Shown: piece by piece, positions 48,990 through 57,330 of the stretch
Position numbering within the stretch: the stretch's first letter is position 1
Layout: every line of letters starts with the position of its first letter
Origin: Guillardia theta CCMP2712
Taxonomy: Eukaryota > Protista > Cryptophyta
Direction of reading: 5' to 3'
Length of the DNA: 64,000 nt
NCBI RefSeq assembly: GCF_000315625.1
Contig: NW_005434657.1
Coordinates: forward strand, 473,319-537,318
Notes under the pieces: generated by a model
Told to the model about the DNA's origin: nothing
Databases searched by the model: none
The model's input: only the letters and a program-made list of their open reading frames with translations
Position numbers and translations under genes: made by a program

Positions 48990-49400
48990 ATGACCCCCAA
49001 TTTGTAAGGGCGGAACCACCCCTACTAAGTACCCTACCCACGGACACTCGACAGGAAGAATGAGGGTAGTCTGCTGTAAAACTTTTGTGCCCTCGGGCGG
49101 ACTCCTCAGTGATCCCGCGGCGGGCGGCCGCCGCGGGCGTGAGCCCCGGGCCGTGGAAGTTCCGGCTCAGGCTAGTAGGTGACGGCCCGACGGTGGCGGC
49201 CCGGGGGCCCGGCCGCGGCACTGGCGGCAACGTGGCAGAGCGGCGGCCCCGGGGGGGCTGCGGCGATGCCCTCAGGGCCTGGGGGCCCGACGGCCGGCAG
49301 TACGCCGGACGGTCCGATCCCGAAGTTCAGGACTGAGCGACAGGGGGGAAACGGGCTGTTGGGCCAGTGGGGGCTCAGAGCCTCCCGGCGTACTCAGAAG
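48990..49400 (+). repeat. Short ACCC tract plus GC island (recurrent intergenic element)
   Basis: ACCCCC/ACCCTACC runs, then a very GC-rich CCGG/GGCC island at 49090-49400. Confidence 0.55.
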
Positions 49401-49448
49401 TATTCAGTACATTGACACAGTATGATTCCTTGACATTCTATTCATTCA

Positions 49449-52400
49449 CTATTCACATCGTTGATCGCGAAAGACGCGGTAGTTCTTGTGCCCTTTCTCG
49501 CTTCTCAGGTCCATGAAGCTCTTCAGCACAAGCTGCAGCTCACAAAGGTGATTGTCGACAAAGAACTTGCGTGTGTAGTCGTTGCTGACGCGAATGTTCA
49601 AACAAATGTCCCGGTAACCGCCTGACTTCATCGAGATGTAGCTTTGATCAAACCTGTTCTTAACTCGTGCGATGTAGATCGCTGGGTCGTCTCTGATGAT
49701 CTCGACGGCTTGCTTGAGCTTGACGATGTCCTCAAACACCAGTGCATACCGCACAATGTCCATGAGACGCGACACGTCACCGTTGTAGGATCGAACTACC
49801 TTTTGGATGGCGCGGTGGACGCTCTTGAGCACAGGTCGTCTGATCAAAGCTCTGCTCTCAGGGTCTTCGATGGTCTCTGCCCAGGAGATGTATCGCTTGC
49901 CCCCTCCCACCTCCTCGTCCACGAGAAAGAGACATTCGCATCGCGAGCCCAACTCCTTCATCTTCTCGAAGAAGACAGGCTGAATCACGAGAGCTTGCGC
50001 ATAGAGCTGCTCTAGCGAGTCGATCTTCAGGTGCCAGGGAACAAACGTCACTGTCCTCGTCACCTCAATGATGGACGAAAGATTAGATCCCCGTTGAATC
50101 AAACTCGGTCGTCGTTGAGACGTTCCTCCTCTCCGGCTGTTTTCCAACCCGATGGGCGTGCGACGCAAGCTTCCTGCCGTCGACGAACGCGGCAAGTGCT
50201 GGACGACCGACGCCTGCACTTCGATCTTGGCGACAATGTCGTTGAGCTCCGCCAAGTTGACTGGGTCTCGCGCAACCTCCTTCCACAGCTGGTGATATTG
50301 CTGAATGTCTCGCTCGATCTTCTTGAACGACTGAAAGAGCAGGTACTGTCTCCACACGTAGAAGAGCAGCCAGGCAAAGAAGAGGAACGTGTGGTTCGGT
50401 CGCAGTGTGACGAGAGTGATACTCAGGTGCCCTTCCCTCAGGTCGATCAGGAGTGTGTTCATGAAGGATCCAGCGACGCAGAAAACAGGCATCAAGGTCA
50501 GCGTGTGCTCTTCTTTGAATTGCATGACAAGTCCATAACCCAGCTCCAAGACGCCCCACAGAAATGATTGCCAGAACCCGAGGGTATCCAGAGGAGTGAA
50601 CACGGCGATGACAATGTCAACAACTCCTGCCACATGGAACGCGCTGGCAGAGGCTGTCTTGCCCAAGAAGATGAAGCCAGCACAGGCAAGCGCAGCAGTG
50701 CCAAAGGTCGCCGTGAGTCTCAGTACCATTCCGATGATCTCACCTACGGCCTCCCATGAGATTCTGAGATCGAAGTGATACCGTTGGTTCCGTGTCCTGG
50801 TGATGTTCGCGACCTGAGAGTGACAGAGCTCGGTTGTTGAGCTCAAGGCGCAATCAAACTTTGAAATCAAGGTCCAACGAGCTTCGCTCAAAGCAGTCGG
50901 ATCCACCTCCAAGCTCTCGTCGCTCACGTGCATTTCAAGAGCTAGAGGATCATGAGAGAAAGAAGAGTTGGATGAACCTGTGTAGAACTCCCATCCATTC
51001 ACGACAACTTGCCTGTCAAATGAGTAGAAGAATTGAGTTCCTCTCGACGCCACTAAGGTCGGATTGAACCTCTCACAGTCTTTCAAGAAACCTACCCCAG
51101 TGATGGATGCATTCTTGACATGGGGGGATCTTACTCGTAGCACAGTGATGCGGGCATGAGAAACATCGTAGCGCCGATTTTTCCAGAGAGTTACGATTGC
51201 AAGATTCTTGTTCACGATCCAACTTGCGATCATGATAACACCTGTCGCTATCAGGGCAACCTGAAATAGGCGCTTGCGAATCACATTGCTGAGAGGTCTT
51301 GAGGAAAACATTACACTTGCGGTCTTTGCATCTTGGACGCCAGCCTCTGCTGAGTGGATGAGGTAGTCTAAGAAGCCTCCTGGCAACATTCCCTTCCCTG
51401 CTATGAGGAGCGGACTTTGAGCGGCGATAGCCGCTCCACTTGAAGCTTCACTCCTGATCCTTGCTTGCATGAAGAAAGAGAATGTTTGCAGAAACTTGCG
51501 ACCCTGCTTGATGAGCAAGAGAAAGTTGCTTCCGCGCCCTCTGTCGATTCGGCGACTCTGCAGCACAAGCTTCCTGTGAAGGTACTCTTGATGCTTAGCG
51601 GGAGATATCAGAGAGTGCATCTCCATCAGAGCAAGACGAATCTCACAGATGTGTCCCAGCAAGTTGGTCTGAATGGCCACGTCGTGAATGAAGCAAATGT
51701 TTATAGTGATATCTCGGTACCCGCTGCAAGCGCAGGAGAGGCGATTTCTAATGAAGACAACTTCAATCTCGTGATCTTCCATGATTTGTTTTAAAGCTCC
51801 ATTCAGGTCTTCCAGGTTGTCAAAGAAGATGCTTTGTCGCACCACGTCAGTCAACTGTGAAACGTCGCCATTCAAGAAAGTTAGGATTTTCTCAACCGAC
51901 CTTTGAACGTTCTTGATGCTTGAGAAATATACATTTTCAACCACTGGTGAAGATTTATCCAAGTCTTTGTACGGCACATACTCTTTCCCACTGTTGTTGG
52001 CGTGCTCATTGCAACAATATCCTCTCCAATCGCTGCCGATCGCGATGACCTTGCGCAAGAAAATTGGAAGCACAACAACTGATCTCGCATACAATTGATC
52101 CAAATTTTGCACAGGAAAGGAGGGCACAGAGTCTGTAAAAGAGCTGACTGAAATCGAGATCATCGAGTCGATCGGGTGTATTTTCGAGCTCCTCGAGCTC
52201 CTGCGACTCAGTTTACCGGCAGAAGGCTGCTCCATCAGAGATGTCGGCATCATGAAAGTATGCTTGCAGTTTGGAATAGACTTGGTTGGATACACGGCGA
52301 AGAAGTCATTCAACACTCGGTCAGTTTCTTGAAGCAAAGCTTGCACTTCAGGTCTCGCCCTGATTGTTTGCCAAGCAGAATCGAATTGTGCCGCATCTTC

Positions 52401-53330
52401 TTTCATCTCTTTCGAGGCAGTTGCTTTACGCGAAATTTTCTTCACTAGTGCCAGAGTGAACAATCCCAGAGTAACCAGTAAATATACCCTGAATGTTTTG
52501 TTCAAACCATGAGCTATCACTCTGATACACAGAGAAGCTTCAATCAGCTCAAGAACAAACGCCTCCATGAATAGAATGGGGCAAGGAAAAATGAAAATGG
52601 TCTGTTGCATGCCATCAGATATCGTCAGCAATACAAACAAAGATCAGACTCACCACAAAGAACGATACCAAGCAATCATATGCCGCAAAATTAGAAGAAT
52701 TCCCGTTCGATCCAATGTAAAGGATGAGGTTTCCAATGCCATCAATCAAGCCGGAATAAGCAATTATCTACAACATTACAACGTGTTAAAGGTAAGATAT
52801 CATGAAGAAAAGTAGTCGTTTACCCGTTTTGGAGCCCTAGTGCCTCCGTAATAAGCAAACATTGCAGACAAAATCAATGCAAATCCTTGCACCTCCAACA
52901 GAACGAAATGGAGATTTTCGTCCCAAGCACAACTTGCCAGACTGAAGTCAATCCATGTTGGATTTCTTTGATAAGGAGTCTGGATCAGATCTGTATTGAC
53001 CTTTACCAACCGATGTGGGTAATCATGATAGGGCATTGACATCAGGTATGCATTGACAACCAAGTAGCATCCAACAATGAACGAGATTGCTTGAAACATA
53101 GTGTGCGCATAAAGAGCAGTTAAAGGTTCTCTGTAGAAGAATGTGGAAAGCAAGCTCTTCTTGTACAGGTCTTGTAAACCGAGCTTGGAGTTCAGGTGAT
53201 CTCCTGGCTCAAGCATGTACAACAAGGTGAAGTGCTCTTTCAGTTGTGCATCGAGCAACCTTATCGGATCTTGCTGAGAACAAGAGTTGTCATTATTCAT
53301 CGGGGTTTGAGGTAAGGAATCGATCTCCAT
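49449..53330 (-). CDS. Multi-pass membrane protein (about 1252 aa, 3 exons) with two RelA/SpoT-like nucleotidyltransferase domains
   Basis: Introns 52823-52768 and 52668-52602 join the 176-aa and 1063-aa ORFs in frame. Domain 1: IKNVQRSVEK...DVVR...SGYRDITIN...CEIRL. Domain 2: LKSVHRAIQK...DIVR...RVKNRF...GGYRDICLN...CELQL. Blocks of hydrophobic segments precede each domain. Confidence 0.85.
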
Positions 53331-54099
53331 TGCTCTGGCTGAGCTGTATACTCAAGTAAAGGGCACATCATAATGCACGTTTGTAGCCTTCCGCACAGCC
53401 ATCGTCGTCTGATACAAACAAGCGTCAGTTTGTCATCACGAGAAGCATATTACGATTCATGAATTCATTCGTTATGATCGAGTGCGTGGTATACAGTGTC
53501 ATAGATTACACACACGGTTGTACCATCCCTATCAGGGACAGTGACTCATCCAACTGCTTATCTGCTTCCTCATCCGTTTGCTCGTCTACTTCTTAAATCC
53601 ATGGTGTGTTCACACATATCTGAATCTAAACCTCATCATCGTCTCTCTCGTCCACATGGCGCTATCCCTTCCATTCCCCTCCCAAGGAGCCTGCATCCCC
53701 TTGCAGTTGCGGTTCCTTCATTTCGCCGCGGTCTCTTCACTAATAATGCACGGCTAAAATCCTTATAAAAGAGCAGGAGCTAAAAATAAAAGGGTTCTGA
53801 CAGTCAAATGTTCAGGGGACTTCCGACTCACCGCTGTCTTCCTGATCAATTCATAGGAGAGCTTCTAATACGATCTGCTGCCCCCATATTACCAGCTATG
53901 CCTTTTGGACACTTTCAGATTTGACTAAAAGAATTCATCATCATCCTGTTGAGCTGCTGATGGCTCCATTGTTGCCTTGATGGTACCGCTACCCCCATCA
54001 ACCTGCGAGAGAGAAGGGGTAGTGTACGGACAAGGGGACCATCCTGCGCGCAGTTTTAAAAGTGAATGAAGAGATCTCTTCTATTCACTGTGTCCTCGT

Positions 54100-54620
54100 A
54101 CTGATTTTTAACTTAACTTTGAGTAAAGCATTGAGCTAGAGGTCGGACATCTCCTTCACTCAAAGTCGCGGTTTTTAGTTAAATCATCACAGTGAGTCTT
54201 TTAACTCAACTTTCAGTACTGATTTGAAAAGTTTAAGTTAAAACTGGTTCAGTCACCAGGCTCCGAAGTCCCGGGCCGGGCGGGAGGCATTACGTAATGT
54301 CGGCCGAGGCAGTCCGAGGCACACACGGGCCCCGGGCTCCGAAGCTTTACGTGAGGCAGACGTCTAATGGCAGCGAACTTCCGAATACTCAAAGATGTGG
54401 TGGCTGGCGGATCGCTCGGCGAACAAGGAAACCCCCGGGCCGGGGCAGCGCTGGACTCCGACGGCTCTCGGCCTCGCAAGACCGTACGTCTCAGGTGATC
54501 CGACTTGCAAACGCATCCGGTCCAGGATCTTTCGTCAGCTCAAGGCCTCCCTGTCCTTTATGTCCTGAGTTGGACCATTCCCCCGCCGCGCATATAGTAT
54601 GGCCGCCGCTGAAGGAATGA
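54100..54620. repeat. AT-rich TTAACTTT segment plus GC island; dispersed-repeat-like
   Basis: The 18-mer ACTTAACTTTGAGTAAAG (54111-54128) is identical to 5264-5281. Palindrome CATTACGTAATG at 54288-54299. Confidence 0.5.
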
Positions 54621-55733
54621 GATAGACGCGTACCGGAATGCATCCGCGATGATGGCAGTGACGTTGTAATGTTGTAGATAAGCCAGCTGGGACATAAAGC
54701 CTTTCTCCTTACGAGTGCTGGGGCCGTGGGCATTCAATCATGAGCCTGTTCCTATTTCATACTACAACCTGAAGTTCATGTCACTGTCAAACCCCTTGCG
54801 CAGCCGAATATCATGCCACCATCGTGGATTCCGCGTACTCTTTGCTGCTCATGGCGAATGTATCGTGTTGAGCTCGCCAAACTTGCAAACACTCGTTGCT
54901 TAGACCCTGATGATAGCTTGTTCCATTCGAATTCTTCGATTGAGACAACAAGCCTGTCGACCGGCTGGCTCACGCTCCAAAGAGGTGATCTCACTCAGTT
55001 GGAGCCTTCGATTCGCAGCGAGCGATTCGCTCCCTGTGTTCATCTCCTCGCTTGCTTCATCCACCCGGACCTGGAGTCAAATAGGGAAAGGAGAAACTTA
55101 GTAGCCAGTCATCACGGCGATCAATGCCTACCCAAACCCAAACATCAGTTAGTTCGAGCTGAGAGCGAAGCAAGACAAGCCAGGCAAAGTAGGGATCTTG
55201 GCGGAGGTCACCCACCTCCTCCGACTCAATGAAATGAGGACTAGCCCTGTTGGAATTGGCCCCGAATGCGGGAGCAGGCAAGAGTCGAGGGGCGACCGGG
55301 CAGGGCAAAGTGAAACCTCTGATGTCTTGGTAAGGAGTACAGCTACATGCGGGAAATGTACCATGAAAGAGGTTTAGTCATTTTGCGACTGTATTGACCC
55401 ATTCTAGAAACATGGCCATTCACGGCGACTGCAAAGAGCCCTGGGCCTTTGGAACACAGCGGCCCTAACGAAACGCTTGTGAGCATCAGGGGCCTTCAAG
55501 TGAGATCAAGACGTCAGGAGGATCTACTTCGATGGCCGCTGATCATCGTCGGCTCGTAAACCATCGCTCCTGCTCTCAGAGGTCCGGGGGGAACACGAAT
55601 CATCACAACGATCGGCGTCCTTGACAAGTCGCTGGGCACGCATCCGTGAAAGGAGGAGAGACGAGGGTTAGTGCCCGTGCGAAAGGCTGTGGAGATGGGG
55701 TATTGTCAGTGTTGGTATTGGGGATGTATTTAT

Positions 55734-57330
55734 TCAAGGCACTCCATCCTCACCGCGGGTCCACCCGTACTTTGTAAGTATACCTCTGTTTTCCACATTC
55801 CTGATTCTGAACGTGTAGTGATTCTCCTTTGGAACGACAAATACAACCTCAACCTTCCAGGTCCCCCCTTCCTCAATGCCCAAAGATTGCAGACAATCAT
55901 ACATGTACCGCAATTTCAGGTCATGTGTCTCCGCAATAGTTATCTGTATGAAGCGCACCAGCTTGTCATTCGAGTCCACAAACCTTGCTTTCCCTTGCTT
56001 CAGAGTACCATAAAAGCTCTTGGAGCAAGCGTCTCTGACTCGCCTTCTTCCTCTGACCTGAGGGTTACCTGCAGCCCAGCCTCGCTCGTCCTATCCGAGC
56101 AAAGAACAGCATCTCAAACAAAATCCCCCGAAGAGAAGGATTCTCAGTCATGCCAGGGAGCTCCTCAATCTTCCTCACAAACGATTCTCCGAGCTTCTTT
56201 GCCAGCTCCCTAGCAACAAACCTGCCGCGACAAAAGCCCAGTACACTTGGAGTCCCATTCGATACTTCCCATGCAGCCGATGGACAAACTTTTTTGAACG
56301 GTCGCCCATGCTCTTGTCAAAGAGCGCCTGGTAATCAGAGACAAAGTCCATCGCTGCAAGGAGATCTTGGATCGCTTGATCTGTCTTTCATCATTCAGTT
56401 CGAACATATGGCGGCAAGAGCCTCCAGCAACATCTAACCTCCATTCCATCACACTAGCCACACTCATGTAGAACTTGTCGTACGTAATGGCCTCCAAATA
56501 CTCCTCAGTCCAGTGTCCACGAGTACACCATCAACTCCTCTACCTTCTCAATTCTATCTAGCTCGATATTTTTCTTTGCTCGAGAAATCATCGACGTCGT
56601 GGTCACAACCCGCCGGTTGTTCCGGTCCTCTTCTTGCTCCGGGACCATCCTCTAAGGACTCTTCTTAGCGACTCCTCTGCACCATTGCGTGGCAAGTCAG
56701 CAATTCTCAAAACTCATTCATCGACTTGTAGCACTTGAACTGAATTCCAATTCCACATCCGCACGCACATCACCATCCATCCCTCCTCTATACTCAGCGA
56801 TTGTACAAAGGACATGGTCGTCATCGACTTCCCCATCCCTGGAGGGCCTAGTAGGATCCAACCCAGACGCCCGGCCTCACACACTCTCTCCTCAATGAAA
56901 TGCCACCACTCATTGAAGCATTTTCCTGCAGTAGAGCATCCGCTGCCTTTCTTGTCCAGAGCTGTCCTGATCCCAAAACGATCCACTTGTCCTTCTCCTG
57001 GTACCCTACCGCGTCCCCTCCCTCTCGGAGACCTCTCCAACCTGCTCGAAGGTCCTCCTCCTTCTTTCGTAGGTTCTCCTTCTCCTTCTCTAGTTTCTCC
57101 TCCTGGTCCGCAAGGTCCTGCAGAACATCCTTCCAGTGTTCCTTGTTTTCCCGTTCGAGATGAAATTTCCGCCTTGCCTCTGCCCTCTTCTCTCGAAGGT
57201 CCTCCTTCTCTCGAAGAACCCTCTTCTTGTCCTGCTCTTGTCTCTTGCTCTTACGCGCGGGTTGCTCATCGTCACCCTCATCTTGTCTGCCGTGCCGAGT
57301 TTGGCCCGGGCATGTGAGCCCCCACGACGG
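55734..57330 (-). pseudogene. Crinkler/CR-effector-like pseudogene (coiled-coil header, P-loop NTPase, REase-like C-terminus)
   Basis: Fragments in different frames: EKLEKEKENLRKKEEDLR; GWILLGPPGMGKSMT (Walker A); VAGGSCRHMF; LVRFIQITIAETHDLKLRYM...VEVVFVVP. Several frameshifts with no convincing introns. Confidence 0.72.

Follow-up and report, generated by a model that had tools for sequence, protein, structure and literature searches.

RelA/SpoT-type synthetases have been described in three settings: as bacterial stress enzymes, as plastid descendants, and as toxins of bacteria and phages. The window analysed here, a 64,000-nucleotide stretch of the Guillardia theta genome, raises the question of what two domains of this type are doing in a eukaryotic protein that spans the membrane many times. 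A sequence-only reading of the window had singled out such a protein on the minus strand, to which all coordinates given below refer.

The gene, GUITHDRAFT_104621, has three exons. An open frame of 1063 aa (49449-52640) and an upstream coding piece (52800-53330) are joined in our own three-exon model (53330-52824, 52767-52654, 52601-49449). Its product has 1257 aa, close to the roughly 1250 aa that had been estimated, and is identical at every residue to the annotated protein (P0168). Coding exon 1 starts with the ATG at 53330 and covers aa 1-169 (52824..53330; transcripts and annotated protein), exon 2 covers aa 170-207 (52654..52767; gene model and transcripts), and exon 3 covers aa 208-1257 plus the stop codon (49449..52601; open frame and annotated protein). 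Intron 1 (52768..52823, 56 nt) and intron 2 (52602..52653, 52 nt) have GT..AG boundaries and are excised precisely in transcript contigs (joints 52767|52824 and 52601|52654). These contigs come from three studies (runs X1, X2, and X7) and represent a single spliced mRNA spanning 49428-53410, with the 5' end near 53410 and the 3' end near 49428. Two studies provide it as a single contig (X1, 3889 nt; X2, 3886 nt), while X7 provides overlapping pieces. The assumption that the exons belong to one mRNA is borne out, as spliced single contigs cover the whole gene. A mis-joined gene model was rejected.

The protein is polytopic, with one unit occurring twice in tandem. The internal duplication that had been read from the sequence is confirmed by BLASTP, which aligns aa 218-547 with aa 920-1248 (E 1e-27). 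In each unit, TM1 is followed by an extracytosolic loop or beta-sandwich and then by TM2-TM6; a juxtamembrane helix and a linker connect these to a RelA/SpoT-type nucleotidyltransferase domain, the enzyme-like part, which is about 190 aa long. The first membrane block comprises six hydrophobic helices according to hydropathy (aa 76-263; 52434..53105); both introns lie inside it, and its TM5-TM6 align with the second unit. It is followed by juxtamembrane helix 1 with its D-x3-F-x3-W motif (aa 264-300; 52323..52433; hydropathy and duplication alignment). The linker between the units and a conserved segment preceding the next membrane helix (aa 553-650; 51273..51566) show 80% identity to the Hanusia ortholog. 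In the second unit, the AlphaFold model of the membrane module (pLDDT 90.8) shows one helix, a beta-sandwich, and five helices, the last of which extends into a long helix. TM1 (aa 651-670; 51213..51272) is taken from this model, and TM2-TM6 (aa 823-965; 50328..50756) are taken from hydropathy and the model. The helix count is thus 6 + 6, based on hydropathy for unit 1 and on the model (1 + 5) for unit 2. The juxtamembrane helices running on from TM6 (aa 966-1007; 50202..50327) stand out in homolog conservation as well as in the model: the Y/F-x3-W motif is near-invariant, with Y976 and W980 each reaching 90% conservation or more among 50 homologs.

The second unit has a confidently modelled beta-sandwich between its TM1 and TM2 (aa 685-818; 50769..51170), which is also delimited by homolog conservation. 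The sandwich carries three N-x-S/T sequons (N704, N752, and N806) and three Cys. Unit 1 has merely a 40-aa loop at the corresponding position, and the architecture of the protein was scored as NEN. A discoidin/galactose-binding beta-sandwich had been proposed between the halves of the protein. The model upholds a beta-rich sandwich flanked by membrane helices, but the Pfam families PF00754 and PF22633 were unmatched at E<=1 in all eight ectodomain segments searched. No other Pfam match was obtained for these segments, nor any significant family match for the sandwich in the searches run. A discoidin-like identity is plausible.

With the order 6TM-cat-6TM-cat, which is found by hydropathy and in the AlphaFold model, both catalytic-type domains come to lie on the same side of the membrane and the beta-sandwich on the opposite side. 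From helix counting, the glycosylation sequons, and the requirement for ATP, we infer that the enzyme-like domains are cytosolic and that the sandwich is outside or lumenal. The TM-C1-TM-C2 layout that had been likened to adenylyl cyclases is thereby recovered. The likeness to membrane class III adenylyl cyclases (6TM-C1-6TM-C2) is one of architecture only: there are twelve helices in two sets of six, and after each set come a helix and a nucleotide-converting domain in the cytosol. EN forms, with a single unit, exist beside ENEN and NEN forms, in which the unit is covalently doubled, just as bacterial homodimeric cyclases exist beside animal pseudo-heterodimeric ones. The catalytic fold of class III cyclases, however, is unrelated to the RSH-type fold of GUITHDRAFT_104621. 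Because the RSH active site sits within one domain, dimerisation is not required for RSH catalysis. A complex prediction for domains 1 and 2, for which controls were not run, had a score of 0.00 and speaks neither for nor against an intramolecular pseudo-dimer.

The assignment of the enzyme-like domains rests on structure and on profiles. Domain 1 (aa 366-552; 51567..52127) was delimited by the family profile and the duplication alignment, and domain 2 (aa 1063-1257; 49452..50036) by profile, Foldseek, and structure model. The first delimitation of these domains had covered their cores, but the full domains are larger. When the structure model of domain 2 (pLDDT 86.6) was searched with Foldseek, the best 50 matches were all RSH synthetases (RelP, RelQ, CapRel, Tas1, FaRel2, Rel, RelA), with a best E of 5.6e-6. 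Domain 2 as modelled shows the alpha/beta nucleotidyltransferase fold of (p)ppGpp/(p)ppApp synthetases, which is set apart from other Pol-beta nucleotidyltransferases. The family profile, when run against PDB sequences, had Tas1 as its best match (E 0.01) and also reached YwaC (E 0.26); the alignment to these proteins pairs K-x7-K, D, K, G-Y-R, and E-x-Q. The twin RelA/SpoT-type folds proposed from the sequence are supported by these structural and profile matches.

Pfam is less responsive. Domain 2 scores 15.8 bits (E 0.018) against RelA_SpoT (PF04607), below the gathering threshold of 27 bits; among 20 paralog domains, the best value is E 2.7e-4. Searches with the whole 1063-aa open frame (E<=1) and with exon 1 returned noise only, RelA_SpoT not being among the matches, and four domain segments had nothing relevant in NCBIfam. 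Some homologs have a precomputed PF04607 match or are named "RelA/SpoT domain-containing protein" in UniRef.

Domain 2 contains K1133, R1137, K1141, R1144, D1155, R1158, K1188-N-R, G1202-Y-R-D1205, N1209, and C1227-E1228-L-Q1230. Domain 1 keeps K437, R441, K445, D459, R462, G501-Y-R-D504, N508, and E527, departs from the domain-2 consensus at T448, L450, and R529, and has a loop that is 5 aa shorter. All motifs quoted in the sequence-only reading are present, including E-I-R in domain 1 and E-L-Q in domain 2. Invariant in 20 domain copies are Q-L-Y of the L(D/E)QLYA motif, the basic residues K, R, and K, D-x-V-R, G-Y-R-D-x3-N, and C-E. The Asp/Glu pair of domain 2 is D1155/E1228 and that of domain 1 is D459/E527; we take D1155/E1228 to be equivalent to D264/E323 of RelSeq, relying also on the HMMER alignment to YwaC. 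The catalytic Asp is found in all 37 N-terminal and all 37 C-terminal copies of 37 twin proteins, and the Glu of E-x-Q in 36 of each. In the region corresponding to R-x-K-x3-S-x3-K, the basic residues for the ATP phosphates (K1133, R1137, K1141, and R1144) are invariant in the C-terminal copies; domain 1 keeps K437, R441, and K445, with T448 replacing Arg. Both domains thus retain the predicted Mg-binding Asp, catalytic Glu, and phosphate-binding Lys residues.

It had been suggested that one domain is active and the other degenerate. The argument for this is weak: 11 of 37 C-terminal copies likewise have R for Q in the E-x-Q motif, Asp and Glu are present in both domains, and the G. theta and Hanusia orthologs are as similar in the first domain (76% identity) as in the second (77%). 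N-terminal copies are relaxed family-wide at several basic and aromatic positions, domain 1 of GUITHDRAFT_104621 having T448 for R82 and L450 for Y84. Across the family, constraint is stronger on the C-terminal domain; the N-terminal domain is probably functional as well in this protein.

One motif that departs from proven synthetases is the acceptor G-loop, which has G-Y-R followed by D-x3-N and lacks the His of G-Y-(R/K)-S-x-H. This departure, together with the subthreshold Pfam score, would fit catalytically dead domains that act as a nucleotide-binding regulator or scaffold on a 12-helix transporter or channel. We regard this as improbable, since the Asp, the Glu, and the phosphate-binding Lys/Arg residues are near-invariant in 74 domain copies, which is hard to explain without catalysis. 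The G-loop may mean that the acceptor differs.

Overall, a membrane receptor-enzyme with active ATP-dependent pyrophosphokinase domains is the best explanation and the one towards which we lean, on the basis of residue conservation and structure models. The domains would transfer pyrophosphate from ATP to a purine nucleotide at its 3'-OH, yielding a ppApp- or ppGpp-like product; alternatively, the acceptor might be the end of an RNA. The membrane module would set the activity via the conserved juxtamembrane helix, and the protein would therefore act as a receptor-enzyme. Among the observations that stand against this explanation are the unusual acceptor motif, the Pfam score, the fact that no cytosolic degrader was found, and the failure of the sandwich to match any family significantly.

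Plant and algal RSH enzymes have the same synthetase fold, which might suggest an ordinary plastid RSH of (p)ppGpp metabolism. The canonical enzymes act in plastids (PMC6881373, PMC5633626) and combine the synthetase with an HD hydrolase, whereas GUITHDRAFT_104621 has neither the hydrolase nor the plastid features. As had been noticed from the sequence, no hydrolase domain is visible: HD_4, TGS, ACT, and other RSH accessory domains have no Pfam match in the protein, so that the layout of long RSH enzymes (HD_4 N-terminal to the synthetase, with TGS/ACT) is not found, and the protein has twelve membrane helices. A plastid presequence had likewise not been seen, in agreement with hydropathy, by which the N-terminus is hydrophilic and has no signal-peptide-like hydrophobic core. 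HD_4 has just two matches in the G. theta genome (contigs C47 and C24), both within canonical HD_4 + RelA_SpoT genes, which are separate and lie on other contigs. The Pfam model that detects these two genes misses the GUITHDRAFT_104621 family at E 0.001. A plastid RSH is contradicted by the domain content and was rejected as exceedingly improbable. The genome-wide Pfam search revealed no stand-alone HD_4 hydrolase and no obvious cytosolic degrader of a reversible (p)ppGpp signal.

The closest prokaryotic relatives found are not the two RSH genes of G. theta but domains within phage-type polyvalent proteins, followed by the effector Tas1. A RelA_SpoT-like region of a polyvalent protein is 30% identical across some 185 aa (E 9e-22). 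Domains of polyvalent and MuF phage proteins share with the cryptophyte domain K-x3-R-x2-E-K, L-x-D-I/V-V, K-N-R-F, G-Y-x-D, H-x-C-E-L-Q-L, and G-H-K-x-Y, and they, too, remain below the Pfam RelA_SpoT threshold. The functions of both are likewise predictions. This kinship to conflict-system domains was judged by sequence matches. Polyvalent domains are soluble parts of huge multi-enzyme proteins, whereas GUITHDRAFT_104621 is an endogenous, intron-containing eukaryotic membrane protein that has the domain in two copies and carries an ectodomain as well. Polyvalent proteins of phages and conjugative elements and MuF-fused phage proteins are predicted to be delivered together with the DNA of the phage or plasmid (Iyer et al., 2017, PMC5512222; Zhang et al., 2012, PMC3482391). 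The context of a delivered toxin (secretion signal, virion protein, immunity gene) is absent here, where an endogenous spliced nuclear gene codes for an integral membrane protein.

Other relatives of the fold differ in similar ways. Tas1 of Pseudomonas aeruginosa, reportedly described by Ahmad et al. in 2019 as a (p)ppApp synthetase and type VI secretion effector, is a secreted single-domain toxin with an immunity protein and has no membrane module (PDB 6ox6). RelQ/SAS1 and RelP/SAS2 (PDB 5ded, 6ewz, 6fgk) are soluble bacterial proteins with 10-15% identity to the cryptophyte domain, and their G-loop has G-Y-R-S-x-H instead of G-Y-R-D-x3-N. Small alarmone synthetases are homotetramers. Soluble single-domain proteins of about 200-250 aa, they contrast with GUITHDRAFT_104621, whose 1257 aa comprise two domains and 12 predicted helices. 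CapRel and FaRel2 (PDB 7ztb, 8pu4) are soluble bacterial toxin-antitoxin or phage-defence proteins controlled by a fused or separate antitoxin. Both pyrophosphorylate the 3' CCA end of tRNA, while Tas1 causes massive ATP consumption.

Active domains might act on a macromolecule, for example by pyrophosphorylating the tRNA 3' CCA end, or drain ATP as Tas1 does. The large, fast-diversifying, receptor-like family could then serve innate immunity or abortive infection, with the sensing of a virus or bacterium at the surface leading to shutdown of the cell. The nearest sequence kin are conflict-system domains (polyvalent and other large phage proteins, Tas1), the ectodomains vary among some 50 paralogs, and a stand-alone HD_4 hydrolase for signal reversal is not seen in the genome. 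Nevertheless, we consider this unlikely, though less so than dead domains: the gene is constitutively present in the transcriptomes of several studies, and the fold scores do not split nucleotide-making from tRNA-modifying RSH enzymes.

In GUITHDRAFT_104621 the RSH catalytic fold occurs twice within one polytopic membrane protein, its catalytic residues intact, and an ectodomain lies on the opposite side; the gene is one of about 50 family members in the nuclear genome of a eukaryote. A literature search on cryptophyte RSH/ppGpp and eukaryotic transmembrane alarmone synthetases found no paper describing the GUITHDRAFT_104621 family. Returning to the receptor-enzyme, a more specific version can be offered tentatively, and we would not yet bet on it: a large cryptophyte surface receptor family with an output domain from phage or bacterial conflict systems, which would make an alarmone-type nucleotide ((p)ppApp- or (p)ppGpp-like) or pyrophosphorylate RNA in the cytosol when the sandwich binds an extracellular ligand. 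If true, eukaryotes would have a hitherto unknown type of transmembrane signalling or innate immunity, with an adenylyl-cyclase-like build and RelA/SpoT chemistry. Active domains would place alarmone-like nucleotides or RNA pyrophosphorylation in the eukaryotic cytosol under the control of a membrane receptor, and would bear on whether (p)ppGpp/(p)ppApp signalling occurs beyond plastids in eukaryotes and on the reuse of prokaryotic conflict enzymes in eukaryotic signalling or immunity. Expression of the gene and the small size of the domains make the chemistry directly testable.

The profile search yielded 94 domain matches in the G. theta genome, and all named homologs are from cryptophytes. 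Homolog architectures are EN (47), NEN (23), and ENEN (13). Nothing usable came from Pfam searches with four distant paralogs that contain introns, or with three long stretches of homologs taken from N-terminal or linker regions. No single duplication event was resolved by a quick FastTree analysis covering 24 N-terminal and 26 C-terminal copies along with 30 single-unit domains and 2 outgroups; the largest clade made up purely of N-terminal copies had 9 members (support 0.45). By nearest neighbour, N-terminal copies pair with N-terminal copies in 18 of 24 cases, while the 26 C-terminal copies are closest to other C-terminal copies in 14 cases and to single-unit domains in 10.

The window covers bases 473319-537318 of contig C17 (genome G000), which database proteins matching it assign to Guillardia theta CCMP2712. 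On its minus strand, it carries a 1063-aa open frame (49449-52640) and, upstream of it, another coding piece (52800-53330). Analysis of the junction region resolves these into a single gene, GUITHDRAFT_104621, with three exons (53330-52824, 52767-52654, and 52601-49449, minus strand) and two short introns, both GT..AG. The 1257 aa that it encodes agree in every residue with the annotated "hypothetical protein GUITHDRAFT_104621" (P0168). Public transcript assemblies from different studies contain single contigs of 3889 nt (RNA run X1) and 3886 nt (X2), and overlapping pieces occur in run X7; these extend over 49428-53410, and both introns are spliced out at exactly the predicted joints. The exons are thus on one mRNA, as the sequence-only reading had assumed. 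A Hanusia phi transcript codes for a full-length ortholog of 1253 aa (72% identity). Raw reads came from one run, from 2026 (X19); its 41 reads map at 49347-49787, at the 3' end of the gene only, in the expected orientation (first mates on the minus strand), pointing to 3' bias of the library or to weak expression in the sample.

Pfam found nothing in the whole protein. Several separate analyses nevertheless agree on a RelA/SpoT synthetase fold for the C-terminal domains of the two units (domain 1, aa 366-552; domain 2, aa 1063-1257). When domain 2 was compared to PDB sequences by phmmer, the (p)ppApp-synthetase toxin Tas1 ranked second (E 0.37), with an alignment covering K-S-x-x-R-A-x-Q-K...D-x-x-R; the top match, a designed helical protein, was taken for noise. 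A profile made from 20 domain copies of the G. theta genome (alignment A1) matched Tas1 with E 0.01 and the small alarmone synthetase YwaC with E 0.26, the latter alignment running through all synthetase motifs. With the Pfam model RelA_SpoT, domain 2 by itself reaches E 0.018, over 98 of the 113 profile positions, and the best paralog E 2.7e-4; neither score passes the 27-bit threshold. Domain 2 was also modelled with AlphaFold (pLDDT 86.6, pTM 0.84), and the best 50 Foldseek matches of this model are without exception RSH synthetases (RelP, RelQ, CapRel, Tas1, FaRel2, Rel, and RelA; best E 5.6e-6). These results together indicate that the predicted fold of domain 2 is that of the RSH synthetase family specifically, beyond Pol-beta nucleotidyltransferases (NTases) in general, in line with the RelA/SpoT-like fold proposed from the sequence.

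Residues were matched by HMMER alignment to YwaC, combined with the known RSH motifs. On this basis, we take K1133 and K1141 to be the phosphate-binding lysines, D1155 the Mg-binding Asp (D264 of RelSeq), K1188 the Lys of the K-D-Y-I motif, G1202-Y-R the G-loop, and E1228-x-Q1230 the catalytic E-x-Q (E323/Q325 of RelSeq). Across 37 twin-domain proteins, the C-terminal copies are near-invariant at all of these positions. The near-invariance of the catalytic residues speaks against a non-catalytic role, in which the domains would regulate a transporter, and we regard such a role as rather unlikely. In the N-terminal copies of the same proteins, the Asp and K79 are retained in 37/37 and the Glu and R96 in 36/37, whereas R75, R82, R128, Y141, and D143 are variable. 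In domain 1 of GUITHDRAFT_104621, T448 replaces Arg, L450 replaces Tyr, R529 replaces Gln, and a loop is five residues shorter. E-I-R cannot serve as evidence that domain 1 is degenerate, because 11 of the 37 C-terminal copies also have Arg at that position. Between G. theta and Hanusia, domain 1 is 76% and domain 2 77% identical. We read both domains as constrained, the C-terminal one being nearer to the family consensus. The active site of RSH enzymes lies within one domain, so the likeness to adenylyl cyclases is one of layout only.

The internal duplication is evident from BLASTP of half against half (aa 218-547 vs. aa 920-1248, E 1e-27), and the segments ahead of the first helix of each half also align, weakly. 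Hydropathy places six hydrophobic segments of unit 1 within aa 76-263. For unit 2, an AlphaFold model of aa 636-1012, built on a 50-sequence family alignment (A2), reached a pLDDT of 90.8; in it, a membrane helix (651-670) leads into a beta-rich domain (685-818) and then a set of four helices (823-930). Next comes a long helix (942-985), which is TM6 at its beginning and then projects out of the membrane, and a further helix (987-1007) follows. The D-x3-(F/Y)-x3-W motif seen in the sequence corresponds to Y976 and W980 on this helix continuing from TM6; they are the sole positions of the whole module conserved in at least 90% of the 50 homologs. Six helices per unit would place the two C-terminal domains on the same side of the membrane as the N-terminus and the two linkers, with the beta domain opposite. 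The enzyme-like domains are probably cytosolic, because they would need ATP and have an invariant free Cys beside the catalytic Glu, because three N-x-S/T sequons and three Cys lie in the beta domain, and because the N-terminus is hydrophilic and devoid of a signal-peptide-like core.

The beta-rich domain is confidently modelled as a genuine beta-sandwich. Its consensus in alignment A2 is G-W-x-F...D-P...W...D-L-R..W. The label "discoidin-like" is reasonable but unproven: ESM language-model neighbours are mostly F5/8 type C and galactose-binding clusters (scores 0.87-0.89, graded by the tool as leads only), atlas fold matches are mixed beta-sandwiches with TM <0.5, and the sandwich has neither a Pfam match nor a Foldseek match below E 0.1. 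Unit 1 has only a 40-aa loop at this place, and the sandwich family profile matches GUITHDRAFT_104621 once, giving the architecture N-E-N (N, NTase-like domain; E, sandwich ectodomain). The architectures of 91 long homologs (EN in 47, NEN in 23, ENEN in 13) indicate an ancestral unit of sandwich, six membrane helices, and enzyme domain, which occurs singly or doubled, the first sandwich often having been lost.

Matches to the domain profile number 94 in the 87-Mb G. theta genome; grouped by hand according to contig and spacing, they represent some 30 twin and some 18 single-unit genes, plus about 10 distant matches, with intron-containing forms among the latter. Among 1.84 billion representative proteins, 5022 match at E<=1e-3, of which 377 reach E<=1e-30. 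All organism-named matches are from cryptophytes (Guillardia, Hanusia, Rhodomonas, Hemiselmis, Baffinella); since most matches are unnamed metagenome or transcriptome proteins, we do not claim restriction to this group. In UniRef, two G. theta paralogs are automatically named "RelA/SpoT domain-containing protein", and precomputed PF04607 matches exist for a few homologs; GUITHDRAFT_104621 itself has neither such a name nor such a match.

When 185,579 prokaryotic genomes were scanned, two relatives emerged, both in metagenome-assembled genomes: proteins of 1219 aa (JBDRRP010000115.1, locus L021:2933-6592, plus strand) and 1769 aa (CALJLV010000086.1, locus L022:2621-7930, plus strand), which also hold InPase, ddrB-ParB, ART-PolyVal, and PBECR1 domains. 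RelA/SpoT domains have been noted within such "polyvalent proteins" of phages and conjugative elements (PMC5512222). Judged by sequence, these are the nearest prokaryotic relatives found; their domain is 30% identical to the cryptophyte domain (E 9e-22) and shares the motifs K-N-R-F, G-Y-x-D, H-x-C-E-L-Q-L, and G-H-K-x-Y. IMG/VR contributed four weaker relatives (L023-L026). One is a 1220-aa phage protein (IMGVR_UViG_3300009149_000007, locus L026:773-4435, plus strand) with a C-terminal RelA/SpoT-like domain containing K-N-R, G-Y-R-D-x2-V-N, and A-E-V-Q; the matches on viral contigs L023-L025 are weaker still.

The G. theta genome has only two canonical RSH loci, both outside the window (G000:C47:131263-132737 and G000:C24:131220-132315), each matching the Pfam models HD_4 and then RelA_SpoT with scores that exceed the cut-offs. 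These two genes presumably code for the plastid (p)ppGpp enzymes. That GUITHDRAFT_104621 is itself a plastid RSH is contradicted by its domain content and is highly improbable. The Pfam models detecting the two canonical genes do not match the family of GUITHDRAFT_104621. This split, together with the closeness to polyvalent and phage domains, argues that the domain belongs to a conflict-associated branch of the RSH superfamily, a placement based on pairwise and profile scores.

Such an ancestry fits the main rival explanation, in which pyrophosphate transfer would be put to destructive use, through tRNA pyrophosphorylation or ATP depletion, in an immune or abortive response. The family expansion fits as well, and so does the negative outcome of the HD_4 search of the G. 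theta genome with respect to stand-alone (Mesh1-like) hydrolases; we consider this explanation less likely than the best reading. The best reading, which we hold to be somewhat probable, is a membrane pyrophosphokinase that resembles a receptor. Its RSH-type domains would be controlled by the extracytosolic sandwich together with the bundle of six helices, via the conserved helix continuing from TM6, and would move pyrophosphate from ATP onto a purine nucleotide or perhaps onto the 3' end of an RNA. The catalytic fold is of a known kind; architecture, host, and family size are new. Algal RSH reviews treat canonical plastid forms, and no paper on the family of GUITHDRAFT_104621 was found in the literature searched.

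Four distant paralogs, on contigs C4, C37, C71, and C149 (L027:831-3329, plus strand; L028:1942-3999, L029:1712-4924, and L030:1806-4001, minus strand), retain the membrane block, the F/W juxtamembrane motif, and the domain start K-x3-R-A-x-Q-K...L-T-D-L-V-R-C. Introns or long acidic inserts interrupt the remainder of their domain, and Pfam has no match in these paralogs. Adjoining the C149 member is a frame (L030:2-1411, G000:C149:9501-10910, plus strand) with a putative class III nucleotide-cyclase-like motif, G-D-A-Y-M-V-A-G ... R-I-G-I-S-V-G. Local clusters of family members point to recent local duplication: a near-identical inverted pair (G000:C206:46645-49452, minus strand, and 54238-57045, plus strand), a tandem pair (G000:C1:833989-836481 and 840439-842931), and a group of four genes spread over about 50 kb (G000:C30:477365-529490). 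The copy at G000:C72:221346-221804 (plus strand) has three in-frame stops (two TGA, one TAG) and is probably a pseudogene.
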